A stretch of 64,000 bases of DNA from Guillardia theta CCMP2712 (lineage: Eukaryota > Protista > Cryptophyta): positions 130,973 to 194,972 of the forward strand of contig NW_005434644.1 of assembly GCF_000315625.1 (NCBI RefSeq). The letters run 5' to 3'. A program made the position numbers and the translations under genes. Below are positions 48,710 to 56,784 of the stretch, piece after piece. The notes below the pieces were generated by a model. That model ran no database searches, was not told the DNA's origin, and was given only the letters and a program-made list of their open reading frames with translations. Within the stretch, counting starts at the first letter, position 1, and the number at the start of each line of letters is the position of its first letter.

Positions 48710-49852
48710 AAAGTCTCCGCCTCTTTCTCGGTGCTGATGTTTCCTTGCAGCGCCGGCGACTGCGGCTACGGAGATGGTTCCTTGTTGATGATTCGGGACT
48801 CCCCTCGTGTGGAGGAGGAGGGTGTGCTCCTGAGCGATGCTCAGCGGCCTCTCTCTCGACCCATCGCTGTGAGGTCATGAGCAAGAGCAAGTGCCCAACC
48901 AAGGGAGGCTTCATAACTCTGCGATAAACCAGACTGAAAGATCTGCCAAACTGAGTTTCGAGGCCTAGTTGATTGACGCAGCTAACCTTGCACTACTTTG
49001 GCATGACCGGGTACAAGTCACAGTTAACAAACTTGTACGTCACTAGTACTCAACTGAATCCTACCGTGACCGGCGTGACCTCACATGTTTTGGATAATGA
49101 TGGAACTTAACTTCAACGTGATTCAAAGTACGGTAGGTGCCGCTGCCGCGTACGGCCACGGTAGTACACACTGACGGTCGGTCGGAGTCTCTCCGCCCGG
49201 GAGTGTCCCTCAGCCTTGCCAGTGACGGCGTCCCTAACTAGTAACTAGTAAGTTGTTTCCCGTCCGACGGCGATCCGCCGGAGACCCGCGGCCAGGCTCT
49301 GAAAGCGGCTGAGCGTTGCCAGTTGAAGTTCACGACGGTCAGGCCCGGGCCCGGGGGCCGACTCCGAGGCCTCCGGGCCGGCCGAGTCCGTGACCGTTCG
49401 ACACTGCGGCCGCAACTTGAACACGGCGTCTCGGATCGGACCGCACAGCGGCATCGGGCTCAGAGTCCATACCGAGCGGCCCCGGCCGGCCCGTACTATC
49501 AGCGCCGTGGTGTGACCGCCGGCCCGGCCGCCGGCGGAAGTTTGGCCCGGCGGGCGGCGGGCCGGCGAGCCACTGAGGTCCGGGCATGAGTCTGCTGAGC
49601 ACTGGCATGCACCTGCTGTCTTTCAATCCCATATACCCCTATAGCAAAGCGATATTATAAGTGAGTCATTAAGATCAAATCCCATACCTCCTACCCTTCA
49701 GCCACCAGTGCGGAGGTAGTGCTTCCTCCCCTCCCCCTCCTTGGTCCCCCCTGCCCCTACTCTTCCCTTCCTCTCCTCCGACCTCACCCACTGCACCAGC
49801 CTCTCTCTCTCTTCCTACGCAGCACACCGCGTTGTCTTCCTGCCCTGCCGCC

Positions 49853-51143
49853 ATGGGATCCTACTACATACCCCCTGTCAACTTCGGGCTGGTCGAAGAC
49901 AACCTGTGAGTAGCGAGGATAGGAACCAGGAAGATGAAAGGGAAAAAGAGCGGAGAAGAGACACTGGCAGGACGAGGCGGGGGAAGGGCGTGACAAAGGG
50001 TGCATGGGAGGGTTCTTATAGTGCCAGGGACACATGGAGGATGGAGGGAGCAGGAAAGAGGATGGGAGCAGGGAAGAGGATAAGCGGAGAAGAGGTTCAC
50101 ATCAAACCAGGTACAGGAGCGGACAGCCTAATGAGCTGAACTATCCCTTCCTCGAGAAGCTGTACGTGTTTATGCAGTCTCCCTGCATGCCTTCCCAGGA
50201 CCTTTGCTGTGCGGTTCTCGTGCTCTACACCTCCCTTCCCTCTTTCCTTACCCCTCTGGTCGTCTCGTTTATTCTCCTCTGCTCTCTCCACCCCATTCCT
50301 TCTAACATGCCCAACAGGCACTTGAAGAAGATCTTGTACCTCTCTCCTGACGCTCCCCCTCCTTCCTTCCAAACCTTTGTCAACGATCAGGGCATTGACC
50401 TGCAGCAACTCGGTAAGCACTGCGGCAGATGCGCTTCCCTGCCTTCTCACGCATCATCAGGATCTGCGGGGGAGGACAGGCAGTCAGCCATGTGGAGCCC
50501 CTTGAGCGAGGAGATCGTCCTACAAGCCCTCCAGCAGATCCTTGATGTACAACCTCCTGCCCCTGCCCCTGCCCCTGCCCCTGCCCCTGCCCCTGCCCTG
50601 CCCCTGCCCCTCCCCCTGCAACCCCGTTCCTTCTCTGGTTGACCAACTTTCCTTACCCTTCTCCCTTCCTTTGCAGACGGAGAGGCACTATCCGCTGTGC
50701 CTGATGGACAGCGTAGGAAGAAACAGAGTAGGGATCGTTGTTGGATGCCTCAGAAAGTTGCAGGCAACGTGCGACGTGCTCCTCCTCCGCTTCCTGACGC
50801 TGTCGCAGAGGTGGAACTTGACTTCGATCTTCGAGGAGTACAGGCGGTACGCAGGGAGCAAGGTGATGCTGTTGTGGAGGGGAGGATGGGGAGGAGCAGC
50901 GCAGAGAGAGCAAAGCGGATCGAGGATAGAGATTGATGTGGCCATGTTTGAGATGGAGGTGAAAGGAGATGGTGAGCATGGATGTTGAAGTCTTGAGTTG
51001 ATCCAACAGCGGATAGGAGGAGTCATCTCAAGGTTGATCTGCTCATGTCTGCTCAGGTTCGCGTTCTCAACGAGCAATTCATCGAGCTCTTTGACACTGA
51101 CCTCGTCACCTACGATCACGCAAGGAAACCTGTCTGGTTGTAA
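49853..51143 (+). CDS. OCA1/Siw14-family (PFA-DSP) tyrosine-phosphatase-like protein, catalytic Cys replaced by Asp
   Basis: Spliced MGSYYIPPVNFGLVEDNL|YRSGQPNELNYPFLEKL|HLKKILYLS...YPLCLMDSVGRNRVGIVVGCLRKLQ|RWNLTSIFEEYRRYAGSK|VRVLNEQFIELFDTDLV...*. Confidence 0.88.
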
Positions 51144-51271
51144 TGCTTTTCCTCTTTCTCCCTTTCCCAACCTCCCCCCTCCTCCTCCTCTTCATGTCCT
51201 TGCATGAGCCTGTATTGCGCCTGATGAGTTCATTGTACATACTTGTCCGACATCATAGCACATTTTCATTC

Positions 51272-54200
51272 TCATGCCGCCAGCACGCCGATGGGTTGGA
51301 AGTCAGCCAGCATCTCGTCGGTGTGGATCGCCTTGAAGATCTCCGTCCCATCCTGCGCAGAGAGGAGGCTCGTCAAAGAGGGAGGACAGGAGGATGAGGC
51401 TGAAAGCAGGGGGGAGAGGAGGAAGGAGGAGGGGGAAAAGATGAAGAAAGGGGGAGAAGAGAGTAATGTCCCCGACGAAGGCGAAGAAAAAGAGGTGGGG
51501 GAAGGAGGAGATACGGAGGGATGTGCGGTGGTGGAGGGGGAGAGGACAGAGGAAAGCTGGAAGGGGGGAGGGGGAAGAGGGAGCGAACTTGCTAGCAGAG
51601 GGCACACACCTTTCCTCCGTACTTGAGGATCGCTTCAGCTCCTGCTGGATGCTCGTCCAGGAAGTCTGTAAAATCGTACACCTGGGATGTTCTAGTCACT
51701 TCACCACTATAATCACCAGCTCCAGCTCCAGCTCCAGCTCCAGCTCCTCCTCACCTTCCCCTCGATGGAAACCCAGCAGCTGTCTTTAGTCTGGTGCTTT
51801 GCCAACTCCTCTTGGCTGATGGTCTTGCTAGCTGGAGACGGCGAAGGAGGAAGGGCTCCCTTTGTTTCCTGCAAGGATGCCTGCTCCTCCTCCTCCGTGT
51901 TTGCGATCGGAAGAGACTGGCCGAGCAATCTTCCGAAGACGACACACTCGCTGCACACAATGTCAGTCAGCCTCGTCTTTCTCCTGTACTTTCCTATGTG
52001 CCCCTTCTGTATCCACTTTGCCCTCCTACCCACTCCCTCCCTCACACCCTGACATGGTGTCCTTACTGGTGCTGCTGCTGCTGCTCCTCCTCCTCCTCAC
52101 CTGAGAGCGTTTCCTCCGAGTCTGTTCTTCCCATGAAGACCTCCTATCACCTCCCCTGCCGCGTACAGTCCACGGACGACGGACCCGTCCTCCCGCAGGA
52201 CAGCCCCATGAGCGTTGATGGCGATACCCCCCATGCAGTAGTGGATAACTGGGGTGACGATGCCCGCGTAGTAGGGTCCTCCTCCAGAAAAGGGGAGGTT
52301 GTGAAAGTATTTCTTTCCCCACTCGTCGATGCCCTGAAAGCAGCAGGAAGAGAACAACGGGGAGAAGAAGGAGGGAGGGAGAGAGAGGAGGAGGAGGAGG
52401 AAGAGGAAGAAGTTTCAGTGTTTTGCCCGACCTGTAAGGTATCTCCAACTTCTGAGCTCTGCAACCCCTCTATCCCCCCACCTATCAGCATACCTTGGCT
52501 CCATCCTCGTCATACTTCTTCATGGTTTGCTGCAGCATCTCCTGGTTCACTTTGCCTTCCCAGAAACTCCAAGCTGCACATCAGGTGATGAGCACGAAGA
52601 AACGAGAATGAGCGATGAGCGATGCGCAGCAAGAGAGAGCAGGGCACTGAGCCAGAAAAAGAGAACAAGGAAAAGGATGAGCAGGAGGTGAGGAGGAGAC
52701 AGAAGGATGCAGGACAAGGGCAAGAGCAGGAGGAGCACTTCACCTGCAAGTTGTTCGAGCGTATCGAACTTGACAAGTAGCTCCTTCCTCGTGTACAGCT
52801 CGATGTGCTTTTTGGCCTTGATCGCTCCCTGTGCGACGAGTCAGACCAGCATGAAAAGAGTCGTAGCCATGTGAGAAGAAACATGAAGAAACATCAGGGG
52901 TAGCGGCTTGTGAGGGGTTTTGATAGCAGAGGATAAAGGGCCAGGGGAGAGATAGATATGAAAGAGAAAGTGGTGGTAGTGGTACCGAGGGATGATGATG
53001 ATCATCATGATGATGATACAAGGAGGTGGGGGGGAAGGTGGTGGTGGTGGTGGAGGAGGAGGAGGAGGAGGAGGAGGAGGAGGAGGAGGAGTGCTTCATG
53101 CTAGGTCACAACCTTCCCGTTGACGACCAGGGCGAACTTGAGATTTTCCCCGTCTACCTCAAGCATTCTTCCTGTCACGTAGTCGCGGGTTCCAAGCTCG
53201 TCGGCGAATCGTTTTCCAGCTGGAGGAAGGGATCAGAGGAACACACGAGACAAGGGAGGAGACAGAGGCGGAGGAGGCGGAGGAGGAAAAGGTACGTCGG
53301 TGGAAGTGAGGAACGAGAAATTCTCTGCTTACTTCGATCCAACAGGATTCCTCCTTCTCCTCGTAGAATTTCCGCGCAGAGAGTCTTCACCTTGTTGTGC
53401 GGATCTGCGGGGTTGTGGAAGCCGGTGGGGTGAACCTGCAGGAAAGTGAGCGAAAGTGCAGACAATGGGTAGAGAAGCATGCAGCAGGGAGGGAACGAGG
53501 ATCGAAGAGGAAGAGGATGTAGTTTGCAGAAAGGGAAGGGAGGCAAATCAGAAATCATGAGCTCGATATCTGTATTCCTGACCTGCACATCGTTGAGGTC
53601 TACAGTCTTCGCCTTGATCGCCATGGCAAGTTTATGTCCGTCCCCAGTGGTTCCCTTGTTGTTGGTGGTAGCATATCTGACGAGGAGTGAGACGATGCGG
53701 GGGAGAAGAAGTGAGAAAACGAAGAATGAAGGAGAGGGGGGGGGGGGAGGGGGGGGGGAGCCGCCACTGAGGCTGCACATAACTCGCGAACAGCGTGAGG
53801 GAGAGAAAGAGGGGGGGAGAGGGAGAGGGAGGGAGGGAGGGAGGGAGGGAGGGAGGGGGAGAGTAAAAGAGAGGAGAGGAGGAGGGAGAGGAGGCAACGC
53901 CAAAAACTCACTTGAGAAGGTCAGGGCGATATTGCTTCAGCAGAGAAGTGTTGGTGTAGTCGCTCGCGTAACCCCCTGTTGCGATGATGACGTTGCGGGA
54001 GTAGAGCTTGCCCTTGCTGCCCTTCTCCTCCTTCCCTCCCACCACCTCGTACTCCACACCCACGACAGCAGCTCCGTCCTCCTCCGTGATAAGCTTCGTT
54101 GCGCTCGTCCACTTCATCAGCCGGAACCTCCCGCTGCCGTCCTCAAGGTACTTCTCCAGCTGCTTCTGGATGGCGAAGATGATGGCACTTCCAGCTAGAC

Positions 54201-56784
54201 CCGAGGAGGGGCGGTGAGTCCTCGGCTTCGAATGCCCTCCCATCTGCCCCACCAGGTCGAGGTTGAGGTGCTCCTTCAGCCGGTACCGCAGCCATGCGAG
54301 CGAGTCCACACTTCCCTCTGTGAGAACGGGGATCAATGGGTTGTCTCCTCGCCCTGCCGCCTTCACCACGTCCTGAGTGAAGAGCTCCACACTGTCCCCG
54401 CTCTTGGTGTCGTTCACGTCAACCGCGTTCACTCCCGAGGAGGCCCAGGCGCTGTTCCCGCCAAGATGCCCCTGCTTCTCCAGCACCACTACGCTTCCTC
54501 CTCGATCCAGCAGCGTCAGAGCCGCCGACAACCCGGCCAGACCTCCTCCGATCACAATCGCGTCGACTGCATCAGAGACAGCAGCACGGACCTCGCTGCC
54601 CATCAGTGCCGCTTCCTTGGAGTAACGTGCCGCGTGCTCCAGGAAGCGCTGGCTGTTGAAGGAGGCGTAGTGCTTGGCAAGCAGGAGCAGAGATTCGTCC
54701 TTGACCAGCAACCTGTCGATCACCGCGTCCTCAGTGCGCGAGTCAATCGCTCCTTTCCTCGCCTGGGAGGCGACAGCAGACAGCGCGAGGTCCAAGAGGT
54801 TGTACGATTCTTGAGGTGGGATGGAACTTACGGTCGAACTTCTTGTTGGCGCCCCAGAGCGAGCTGGCGCAGGAGCAGGAGGGGACGGGGGGGAGGGGAC
54901 TTGCGCAGGGGGAGCAGGCTGGTTCATGACCTTCTCGTCGAGCACATCTCCCTTGTAGAGCAGCTGATGCTCATAGAACTTGGTGGTAAGGCGAGGGACC
55001 GCAATGATCGCGTGCGAGAACTTGTGCAGGGTGTTGAAGAGCGCGACGAGCTCCGGCCGGGAGAGCGAGGTCGAGATGAGCTGCTCAGGGATGAGGAGGA
55101 TCTTGAGGGCAGTCCCCAGCCCCAGCAGCTGGAGCTTCCCATGCAGCTTGCACTTCTGGCACGAGATGCAGTCCATGACCTCGGAGATATTGTGGAACAC
55201 TCCCTTGAACTGGCTCTTGAGGGACTTCTGGACCTCTGACTCCTCCCCGTCAGACTTGAACATGATCTGCTCGTCGAAGGCCTCGAACACGTGCGAGCAG
55301 GAGGCCAGCAGGTGGGAGTCTAGAAGCCTCTGCACGAGGAGGGAGGTCCTTTTGTCTTCTGCAATCTCCCCGACGGAGAAGGGGAAGTTGTAGAGGTAGG
55401 GAGCAGCCTTCCTCAGCGCCCGCAGCAGCACCACGAACGCGAAGTGAAGGTTCTTGAGCCTCTCCGGGTTGGCTCCGTAGTGGTTCATGAAGCGATCAAG
55501 GTTCGGCTCCCACTTGTCCCTCTTCCCCTTCACTGGGGGATAGTACTGCTCCGAGATGTGGATGTTGATGGACGCGTGCATCCCCGAGAGCATACGGTAC
55601 AGGACTCGCTCCTCGTAGCACATCTCGTGCAACGACCCGAGCTTGTCGAAGCAGTTCTCATCATAGATCGCGTTCCACACGTGGGATCCGTTGTATCCCG
55701 TCCACCGCTCCGGGTTCAGCTGGAGATTCACGTACTCTGATGCGAGACTCGGTCATCGACATCCTCCCACGGAACTCTCGCATCACCTGTGCTGTTCGTC
55801 GGGATCTTGTGGCAGATGTCGAGCCAGTACTCGGGGAGGGCAGGGTCGTCGCAGACCTTGCTCTCACCATCCAACAGCTTCTTCTCGTCGTTGGAGATCG
55901 TCTTATCCACTAGGTTAGTGATGGGGGGCATGAAACCTCCGAAGAGTCCCTGAAGCACCAAGTCACTAATCTCACGCCTTGCACACTCCAGCACTTGACC
56001 GGGGGTGGAGCATTGAACCCAATCTTCTTCTCCCCGACCTGTCCCATCGTTCATAGCTCGCCTCCCAACGCACCAACTGTTTACCTTCCCTCCTCCAGAC
56101 AGATCTAGATCGCACTGCTTCTTTCCCTTGGGCTTCACTCCTTCCACCTCTTCCCCGGCTCCAGCAGCCGCCTCACCAGTTGCAGAGGAGTTGCACTTGG
56201 CTTCTGAAACAGCCTGCAAACAGGGTGTCAACTATCATGTTGTCCCAGTGGTGTCGAAACACAAGAAAGGGAACTATTCTCCTTTATTGAGACGAACCTT
56301 GGTCCAAAACTTGCACTTTCCTTCCAAGTTTATCTGGAGAAGACGAAAATAGGTTGTATTGACAAGCTGCCAAAGCAAACAATCAACACGACAATGACCA
56401 GGATGAGGTGAAACTAGTGCAATGCACCTCAGAGAGAATCGAATGCAGCTGCTGCGAGTTTGCCTTCTCAACCGCTTCAACGTCGCACTGAGCATCATCG
56501 ACAGGTCCTGTTGCTAACAGTCACTGCGAGGCATGTCAGGGCTCAAAGAGTTTGCCTGAAGGCACGCATCCGAACTCGTGTTTCACCGCCCATGTTGGGA
56601 CTTTCTGAGGGCCCCAGGTCAAAAGAACGCGTCTGCGAGCATTGAAACATCTTACTGTGGATGAAACTTCAGCCTCGGCTACTGCTAGCACAAGGAGCAA
56701 ACAGGCAAGGCCTGCCAAACGGCATCAGACAAGATCAGCACGAGATTACTGGCTCTGCTTACCACAACAGGCTTTCATGGCCAT
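51272..56784 (-). CDS. Fusion protein: signal peptide + Ero1 + FAD-dependent fumarate reductase (Osm1/Frd1/flavocytochrome c type) + cytochrome b5
   Basis: Ero1 motifs: YFRLLQINLEGKCKFW, LNPERWTGY, YRMLSGMHASINIH, MDCISCQKCKLHGKLQLLGLGTALKIL. Reductase motifs: VIGGGLAG, GGNSAWASSG, GGHSKPRTHR, IATGGY, QVHPTG, AEILRGEGG, ELGTRDYV, HYCMGG, GLYAAGE..GGLHGKNRLGGN. Cyt b5 motifs: [31 protein letters not shown]...DGTEIFKAIH. Confidence 0.92.

Follow-up and report, generated by a model that had tools for sequence, protein, structure and literature searches.

Ero1 takes electrons from protein disulfide isomerase (PDI) and passes them to O2, with the production of H2O2. In yeast, Ero1 and the fumarate reductase Osm1 can form disulfides anaerobically (Kim et al., 2018, PMC6242907). 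They are separate proteins with a Kd of about 150-200 µM, and Ero1 binds Osm1 where the Shewanella flavocytochrome c3 (Fcc3/FccA) carries its heme domain; docking leaves the two flavin adenine dinucleotides (FADs) more than 20 Å apart, and the electron step between the two enzymes was left unexplained (PMC6242907). Ugalde et al. (2022, PMC9516139) note that plants are not known to have a system of this kind. The bacterial route from DsbB through menaquinone to fumarate reductase also couples disulfide formation to fumarate without oxygen, but it is multi-protein, based on membrane and quinone, and made of unrelated folds (PMC2672033). Here we describe a gene of the cryptophyte Guillardia theta CCMP2712 which encodes an Ero1 domain, an Osm1-type fumarate reductase and a cytochrome b5 on a single chain. 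It lies in a stretch of 64,000 nucleotides (positions 130,973 to 194,972 of contig NW_005434644.1), hereafter the window, to which all coordinates refer.

From the N- to the C-terminus, the protein comprises a putative signal peptide, Ero1, a Pro-rich tether, a conserved four-helix domain, the fumarate reductase and a bis-His cytochrome b5. We propose as the probable reading of these data that it acts in the lumen of the endoplasmic reticulum (ER) as a protein-dithiol:fumarate oxidoreductase in which the heme bridges the two FADs; that thiols are coupled to fumarate by one route or another is considered likely. The parts and their coupling in yeast were already known. What seems to be new is an Ero1 subfamily set apart by an electron sink of its own, by the altered shuttle loop and by a domain that has no name.

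Gene structure and transcription

The gene, GUITHDRAFT_162941, runs from 56784 to 51272 on the minus strand (scaffold JH992994.1), and its product, XP_005833402, carries the database label 'hypothetical protein'. The coding span has 18 exons, all in phase and stop-free, encoding 1160 amino acids (aa), while the reference annotation adds 29 aa by beginning at an ATG further upstream. Exon 9, a stop-free exon of 607 codons (55736-53912), holds both the ERO1 match (Pfam, E = 3e-84) and the N-terminal half of the match to FAD_binding_2 (E = 7e-28). The key junction is therefore independent of splicing, as had been claimed in a previous reading of the sequence alone (the sequence-only reading).

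Splice joints were obtained by comparing four public runs with the region. Fifteen of the 17 introns were in the resulting joint table. Wherever the two independent RNA-type studies overlap, their joints agree, and the joints match the introns that separate the Ero1, reductase and b5 parts. A spliced contig of 4005 nucleotides (nt) from run X4 extends from the 5' untranslated region (UTR) through Ero1 and the reductase and, judged from its length, is expected to reach the b5 exons. In run X12, a contig begins within the reductase and includes the last b5 exon. In addition, the last intron was seen in raw RNA reads. The sequence-only reading had suggested profile searches, transcripts and a search for the architecture elsewhere as checks. 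ERO1, FAD_binding_2 and Cyt-b5 were all matched by Pfam on the exons, the contigs join Ero1 to the reductase (X4) and the reductase to b5 (X12), and at least 174 three-domain proteins were found across many eukaryotic groups. An artefact, whether a misassembly or the read-through of two adjacent genes, was thus rejected and is given practically no probability, because the junction lies in one exon, spliced contigs span the domains and there are at least 174 three-domain homologues, some of them on intronless genomic open reading frames (ORFs).

The exons were delimited by RNA joints, phase and their match to the MMETSP transcript-derived protein P0145 (1160 aa), to which each of the 18 corresponded with zero mismatches. 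They were searched singly, and whole-protein analyses were made on P0145, which is identical to them. Their minus-strand coordinates are 56784-56763, 56711-56656 and 56604-56556 (exons 1-3), 56507-56428, 56366-56298 and 56213-56085 (exons 4-6), 56038-56000, 55949-55787 and 55736-53912 (exons 7-9), 53676-53583, 53435-53333 and 53219-53113 (exons 10-12), 52828-52744, 52573-52494 and 52333-52101 (exons 13-15), and 51950-51755, 51681-51610 and 51352-51272 (exons 16-18). Exon 7 has only 39 nt. Exon 3, of 49 nt, has a GC donor and is followed by a 48-nt GC-AG intron (intron 3, 56555-56508), and RNA contigs of two runs back both this exon and this intron. The 3' UTR (51271-51215) reaches a poly(A) site at 51215, located by poly(T) loose ends in raw RNA reads of run X24. 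On the plus strand, a convergent neighbour at about 49850-51150 with a PF03162 Y_phosphatase2 domain (Siw14/Oca-like) ends about 130 nt from the stop codon of the fusion gene, and RNA contigs suggest that the 3' ends of the two genes abut or overlap.

Catalytic sites and predicted structure of the domains

Residue conservation was assessed by aligning 123 full-length relatives that share 42-89% identity with P0145. The Ero1 domain (residues about 44-458; 56507-54970, minus strand), delimited by Pfam PF04137, PDB alignments and conservation, was modelled with the fold of human Ero1a (3ahq; Z = 33.3 over 316 residues). The inner CxxCxxC site, which the sequence-only reading had placed near 55170, was found at 55170-55150 on the minus strand (C392-C395-C398); it is invariant in 123/123 relatives and kept in all three-domain proteins listed (at least 174). 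At the FAD site (R213, T215, W223, H256 and R295), H256 is conserved in 123, W223 in 122 and T215 in 121 of the 123 relatives, while R295 is present in G. theta and variable across the family (R/H/Y). The fold, the inner site, the FAD-site residues and an N-glycosylation site beside the inner site are shared with canonical Ero1s (human 3ahq, yeast 1rp4 and 3m31).

The fusions differ from canonical Ero1s in forming a separate clade, in a CX10-44C shuttle, in extra conserved cysteines and in their C-terminal electron-sink domains. Alignment to human Ero1a identified C99 and C126 (CX26C; 56195-56112, minus strand) as the outer shuttle cysteines. Their spacing was never CX4C in the fusions (0/109), the spacer being 10-44 residues long in 109/109 and predicted to be disordered, whereas stand-alone Ero1s from the same search mostly had C-x8-C-x4-C. 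Given that both shuttle cysteines are kept, the domain appears to be Ero1-like, yet not a canonical Ero1. This loop, together with the additional conserved cysteines C181 and C349 and the variable R295, favours another interpretation, namely that the fusion Ero1 no longer oxidises PDI and that its long loop serves glutathione, a special PDI/thioredoxin or redox sensing, the protein not being a general folding oxidase. We consider this very unlikely, since the second shuttle cysteine retains the C-S/A-L/V context of canonical Ero1, both shuttle cysteines are present and the inner site, W223, H256 and T215 are intact. It must be noted that C181, C194 and C349 are nearly invariant in the fusion family (C181 and C194 in a C181-x12-C194 loop) and may form family-specific structural or regulatory disulfides. 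None of the stand-alone Ero1s retrieved had a b5 domain. In one protein, P0327 (999 aa), a canonical-type Ero1 is joined to an HD-domain region, perhaps through the merging of two gene models.

Between Ero1 and the reductase, the sequence-only reading had described a Pro-rich/helical linker. Its Pro-rich part stands as a disordered tether (residues 464-506; 54954-54826, minus strand), with a predicted local distance difference test (pLDDT) score below 50 and a length that varies across relatives (median about 32 aa over the interval). The helical part, in contrast, turned out to be a conserved predicted four-helix domain (residues 510-579; 54816-54607, minus strand; pLDDT 92-97). This domain was present in 225/225 Ero1 plus reductase proteins of the first two word-index searches and went undetected in a few very divergent relatives; no Pfam family, PDB sequence or ESM-Atlas cluster matched it.

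The fumarate reductase (residues 592-1061; 54570-51902, minus strand), of the soluble Osm1/Fcc3 type, was defined by TIGR01813 on an orthologue, by structure match and by its residues. The Hanusia orthologue P0121 (87-89% identical), scored in place of the G. theta protein, reached 357 bits with TIGR01813 against a cut-off of 285, and four other full-length relatives reached 333-381 bits. Osm1 was the best match of this domain in both sequence (Hanusia orthologue, E = 5e-77) and structure (5glg; Z = 47.6, root-mean-square deviation 2.3 Å, 455 residues, 37% identical). Among full-length relatives, succinate dehydrogenase and L-aspartate oxidase were rejected as assignments, since they fell below the NCBIfam cut-offs and only TIGR01813 (flavocytochrome c) passed. 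The FAD is of the non-covalent type, the invariant A634-S635-S636-G637 aligning with Osm1 and replacing the covalent His motif of SdhA/FrdA. The motifs QVHPTG, ELGTRD, HYCMGG and NRLGGN, named in the sequence-only reading as substrate-site His/Arg motifs of an Osm1/Frd1-type flavoprotein, are all present. H844, E864, R867, R888, H998 and R1038 of P0145, invariant in 123/123, correspond to H281, E301, R304, R326, H435 and R477 of Osm1, which are needed for its activity (Kim et al., PMC6242907).

Whether fumarate is the acceptor has to be weighed at this point. The reductase/b5 sink might have a mainly aerobic role, limiting H2O2 from Ero1 or feeding another luminal acceptor (O2 via the heme, metal ions or another enoate), fumarate not being the physiological one. 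The FAD_binding_2 family does include other enoate reductases, such as UrdA (structure match to the domain with Z = 42), the position of Fcc3 Thr377 is Ala or Gly in the fusions, and the carriers include aerobic phytoplankton (Ostreococcus, diatoms, Emiliania). Nevertheless, the dicarboxylate-binding residues (H844, H998, R1038) and the proton path (E864, R867, R888) are complete, and Osm1 itself has Ala at the Thr377 position. We therefore regard this alternative as improbable and retain fumarate as the likely acceptor. The Shewanella Fcc3/FccA is alike in being a soluble fumarate reductase with non-covalent FAD fed by a tethered heme domain (Z = 41-44); it differs in its four N-terminal c-hemes and its periplasmic location, the G. 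theta protein having one C-terminal b-heme and protein thiols as the proposed electron source.

The C-terminal cytochrome b5 domain (residues 1086-1158; 51829-51281, minus strand) was matched by Pfam PF00173 on exons 16-17 and by b5/b2 entries of the PDB (E = 5e-16). Both heme His noticed in the sequence-only reading are present as H1121 and H1144 (51651 and 51325, minus strand) and are invariant in 123/123. All but two of the Ero1 plus reductase proteins with a complete reductase carry b5. A separate class of Ero1-reductase proteins without b5 was considered and rejected, the 86 such proteins being nearly all truncated inside the reductase.

With regard to the structure of the whole, the best solved relatives were human and yeast Ero1 and yeast Osm1, and the AlphaFold model of the full-length protein had a mean pLDDT of 81.8. 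The helical domain, reductase and b5 modelled together gave a predicted template modelling (pTM) score of 0.84; as a rough expectation, a well-placed reductase without its partners would give about 0.72, and docking of one further domain would raise this to 0.81. Residues 592-1160 superposed on an independent model of a fungal reductase-b5 protein (543 residues, 2.7 Å), which suggests that the docking site of b5 on the reductase is conserved. Stand-alone reductase-b5 proteins of this kind (Rhizoctonia, Lentinus, Cladochytrium; UniRef 'fumarate reductase (NADH)') share the domain order and the predicted docking with the fusion, but mostly lack a signal peptide, starting at the FAD motif, form their own clade and have neither Ero1 nor the helical domain.

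Proposed electron path

The N-terminus (residues about 1-21; 56784-56671, minus strand) is a hydrophobic, signal-peptide-like stretch encoded by exons 1-2 and split by intron 1, in agreement with the signal peptide of the sequence-only reading. A hydrophobic N-terminus was found by a crude hydropathy test in 85 of 93 relatives with a complete N-terminus, the sequons N218 (120/121) and N385 (119/123) of the Ero1 domain are kept family-wide, and four divergent members have KDEL-like C-terminal ends; the G. theta protein has neither a retention signal nor an internal transmembrane helix. From these features we infer a location in the ER lumen. There, as in the established chemistry of Ero1, reduced PDI would give two electrons to the shuttle cysteines of Ero1, which would pass them to the inner C395-C398 pair and from there to the Ero1 FAD. 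The FADH2 would then reduce the b5 heme, one electron at a time, instead of or besides producing H2O2 from O2, and the heme, docked on the reductase domain, would hand the electrons to the reductase FAD for the reduction of fumarate to succinate. For this, the Ero1 domain, which is probably mobile on its tether according to the models, or that of a neighbouring subunit, would swing onto the reductase-b5 unit. The overall reaction is downhill, with PDI at about -180 mV and fumarate at about +30 mV.

In comparison with yeast Ero1 and Osm1 (Kim et al., 2018, PMC6242907), the same two enzymes, with all six Osm1 catalytic residues, would work in the same compartment, but they are on one chain, to which b5, the four-helix domain and the long shuttle loop are added. 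Osm1 lacks a heme domain and relies on a second flavin pocket, which the fusion has not preserved: of the pocket residues S78, P162, W295, F297, F362 and Y363, only the Ser and the Tyr are kept, and the positions of W295 and F297 are V858 and T860 in G. theta and variable or T/I/V in the family. The heme may fill the electron-transfer gap left open for the yeast pair. The same dithiol-to-fumarate reaction could also proceed through free FAD or flavin mononucleotide (FMN), or by direct contact between the FADs as proposed for yeast, with b5 as a passenger of an older reductase-b5 unit, an electron buffer or a side exit. Yeast Osm1, without b5, still supports Ero1 via free flavin (PMC6242907), and reductase-b5 is a stand-alone unit in many eukaryotes. 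Against this stand the loss of the aromatic pocket (W295, F297) and the invariance of the heme ligands across more than 100 divergent fusions. Moreover, yeast Ero1 can reduce b5 directly in vitro: according to Gross (2006), as reported in the review PMC2672033, its anaerobic electron acceptors include free flavins and azurin as well as the cytochromes c and b5. A passage of electrons that leaves the heme aside is consequently judged rather unlikely, and we prefer the heme as the bridge.

Several observations weigh against a heme-bridged path from PDI to fumarate. The shuttle loop is remodelled, so that oxidation of PDI is not to be assumed. The full-length model does not place Ero1 firmly against the reductase, its pTM being 0.58 where a chain with every domain fixed should reach about 0.86. 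The step from the heme to the reductase FAD may be uphill, and we know of no established supply of fumarate to the ER lumen in the carrier organisms. The reductase-b5 unit exists without Ero1 in cytosolic proteins of fungi and others, which means that b5 could work with the reductase in some other way. Many carriers are aerobic surface plankton. The hard-wired path claimed in the sequence-only reading is thus supported in its architecture, intact residues, ER-lumen signals, conservation and published yeast half-steps, and its remaining steps are those that we infer. Under this reading, the physiological role would be disulfide formation independent of oxygen and free of peroxide, and the G. 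theta protein could probably fold proteins without either.

Distribution, origin and significance of the family

Homologues were collected in three homologue searches and one representative search. The at least 174 three-domain proteins, redundant entries included, belong to stramenopiles, alveolates, rhizarians, cryptophytes (Guillardia, Hanusia), green algae, diplonemids, amoebozoans and a choanoflagellate. The named carriers comprise diatoms (Thalassiosira, Skeletonema, Cyclotella, Leptocylindrus, Stephanodiscus, Mediolabrus), labyrinthulomycetes (Hondaea, Mucochytrium, Aplanochytrium), Incisomonas, alveolates (Polarella, Amoebophrya, Perkinsus), rhizarians (Paulinella, Norrisiella), green algae (Prasinococcus, Mesostigma and a cluster with Ostreococcus lucimarinus XP_001420806), four diplonemids, two amoebozoans (Pyxidicula, Copromyxa) and the choanoflagellate Savillea; the haptophyte Emiliania has a partial fusion. 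None of the named fusion matches listed, which are not a census, came from an animal, a fungus or a land plant. Perkinsus P0264 was considered as a natural Ero1-b5 protein with half a reductase and rejected as a gene-model error, its locus being one uninterrupted 1083-codon ORF with the reductase motifs. The 864-aa public model of Perkinsus chesapeaki (KAF4678287, L006:2001-5252) loses half of the reductase via false introns, whereas the 1083-codon frame is open throughout and has an ADEL signal at its end.

Members are named in databases as 'hypothetical protein', 'flavocytochrome c', 'fumarate reductase' or 'cytochrome b5 heme-binding domain-containing protein', and one automatic name lists an ERO1/FAD-binding domain. 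Automatic annotation can thus pick up the architecture, which nevertheless seems to be undescribed: in a literature search outside the subscription journals we found no paper on an Ero1-fumarate reductase-b5 fusion and none in which Ero1, fumarate reductase and cytochrome b5 appear together, and no PDB chain covers both the Ero1 and the reductase domains.

The trees of the Ero1 domain (148 rows) and of the reductase were both quick and unrooted. In the former, a branch with 100% support in the Shimodaira-Hasegawa-like approximate likelihood ratio test (SH-aLRT) separated 68/68 fusion rows and 12 short rows from 60/60 stand-alone Ero1s of the CX4C type. The short members were considered as stand-alone Ero1s inside the fusion clade and rejected, since those checked mostly end in or just after the Ero1 or helical domain and look like fragments. 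Within the fusion side, diatoms, cryptophytes, thraustochytrids, most diplonemids and a four-member Savillea group each cluster, which argues against contamination; the deeper nodes had no resolution. In the reductase tree, the cytosolic reductase-b5 proteins formed their own group (100%), and Ero1-less reductase-b5 proteins with an N-terminal membrane anchor, several of them diatom paralogues, sat among the fusion reductases, which suggests a later fission with secretory targeting retained. Six anchored proteins of the diatom group (P0428, P0431, P0434 (Cylindrotheca), P0424, P0429 and P0408) group with diatom fusions (98% SH-aLRT) and are likely fission products. Another signal-anchored reductase-b5 (P0449, L007:1001-2761; also P0458 and P0476) lies on an intronless, gene-dense contig of 25% GC, adjacent to a restriction-enzyme-like gene, and may come from a giant virus.

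These comparisons speak strongly for a single origin of the fusion, while the trees favour neither ancient vertical inheritance nor spread by transfer or endosymbiosis. The fusion is met in most lineages of unicellular eukaryotes, and the family appears to be an old Ero1 subfamily of pan-eukaryotic reach that has acquired a fourth domain and an altered shuttle loop, a point that the sequence-only reading had missed. More tentatively, and with somewhat less than even confidence, it may be a second Ero1 subfamily of great age that has so far escaped description and that may go back to the last eukaryotic common ancestor or close to it. It would act as a self-contained, O2-independent disulfide generator (thiol to FAD to heme to FAD to fumarate), kept in protists of Diaphoretickes, Discoba and Amorphea, whereas animals, fungi and land plants would have lost or split it, with yeast Ero1-Osm1 as its unfused counterpart.

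O2-independent disulfide formation in eukaryotes and the route from the Ero1 FAD to an alternative acceptor are open questions. With donor, heme and acceptor on one chain, a single purified protein and its point mutants suffice for testing the path from end to end, and Ostreococcus, diatoms and Diplonema papillatum are carriers tractable for genetics. If the proposed activity is true, a peroxide-free and O2-independent source of disulfides would be useful for protein production in hypoxic cultures, and the spread of the family over Diaphoretickes, Discoba and Amorphea would bear on the functioning of the early secretory pathway at low oxygen levels.

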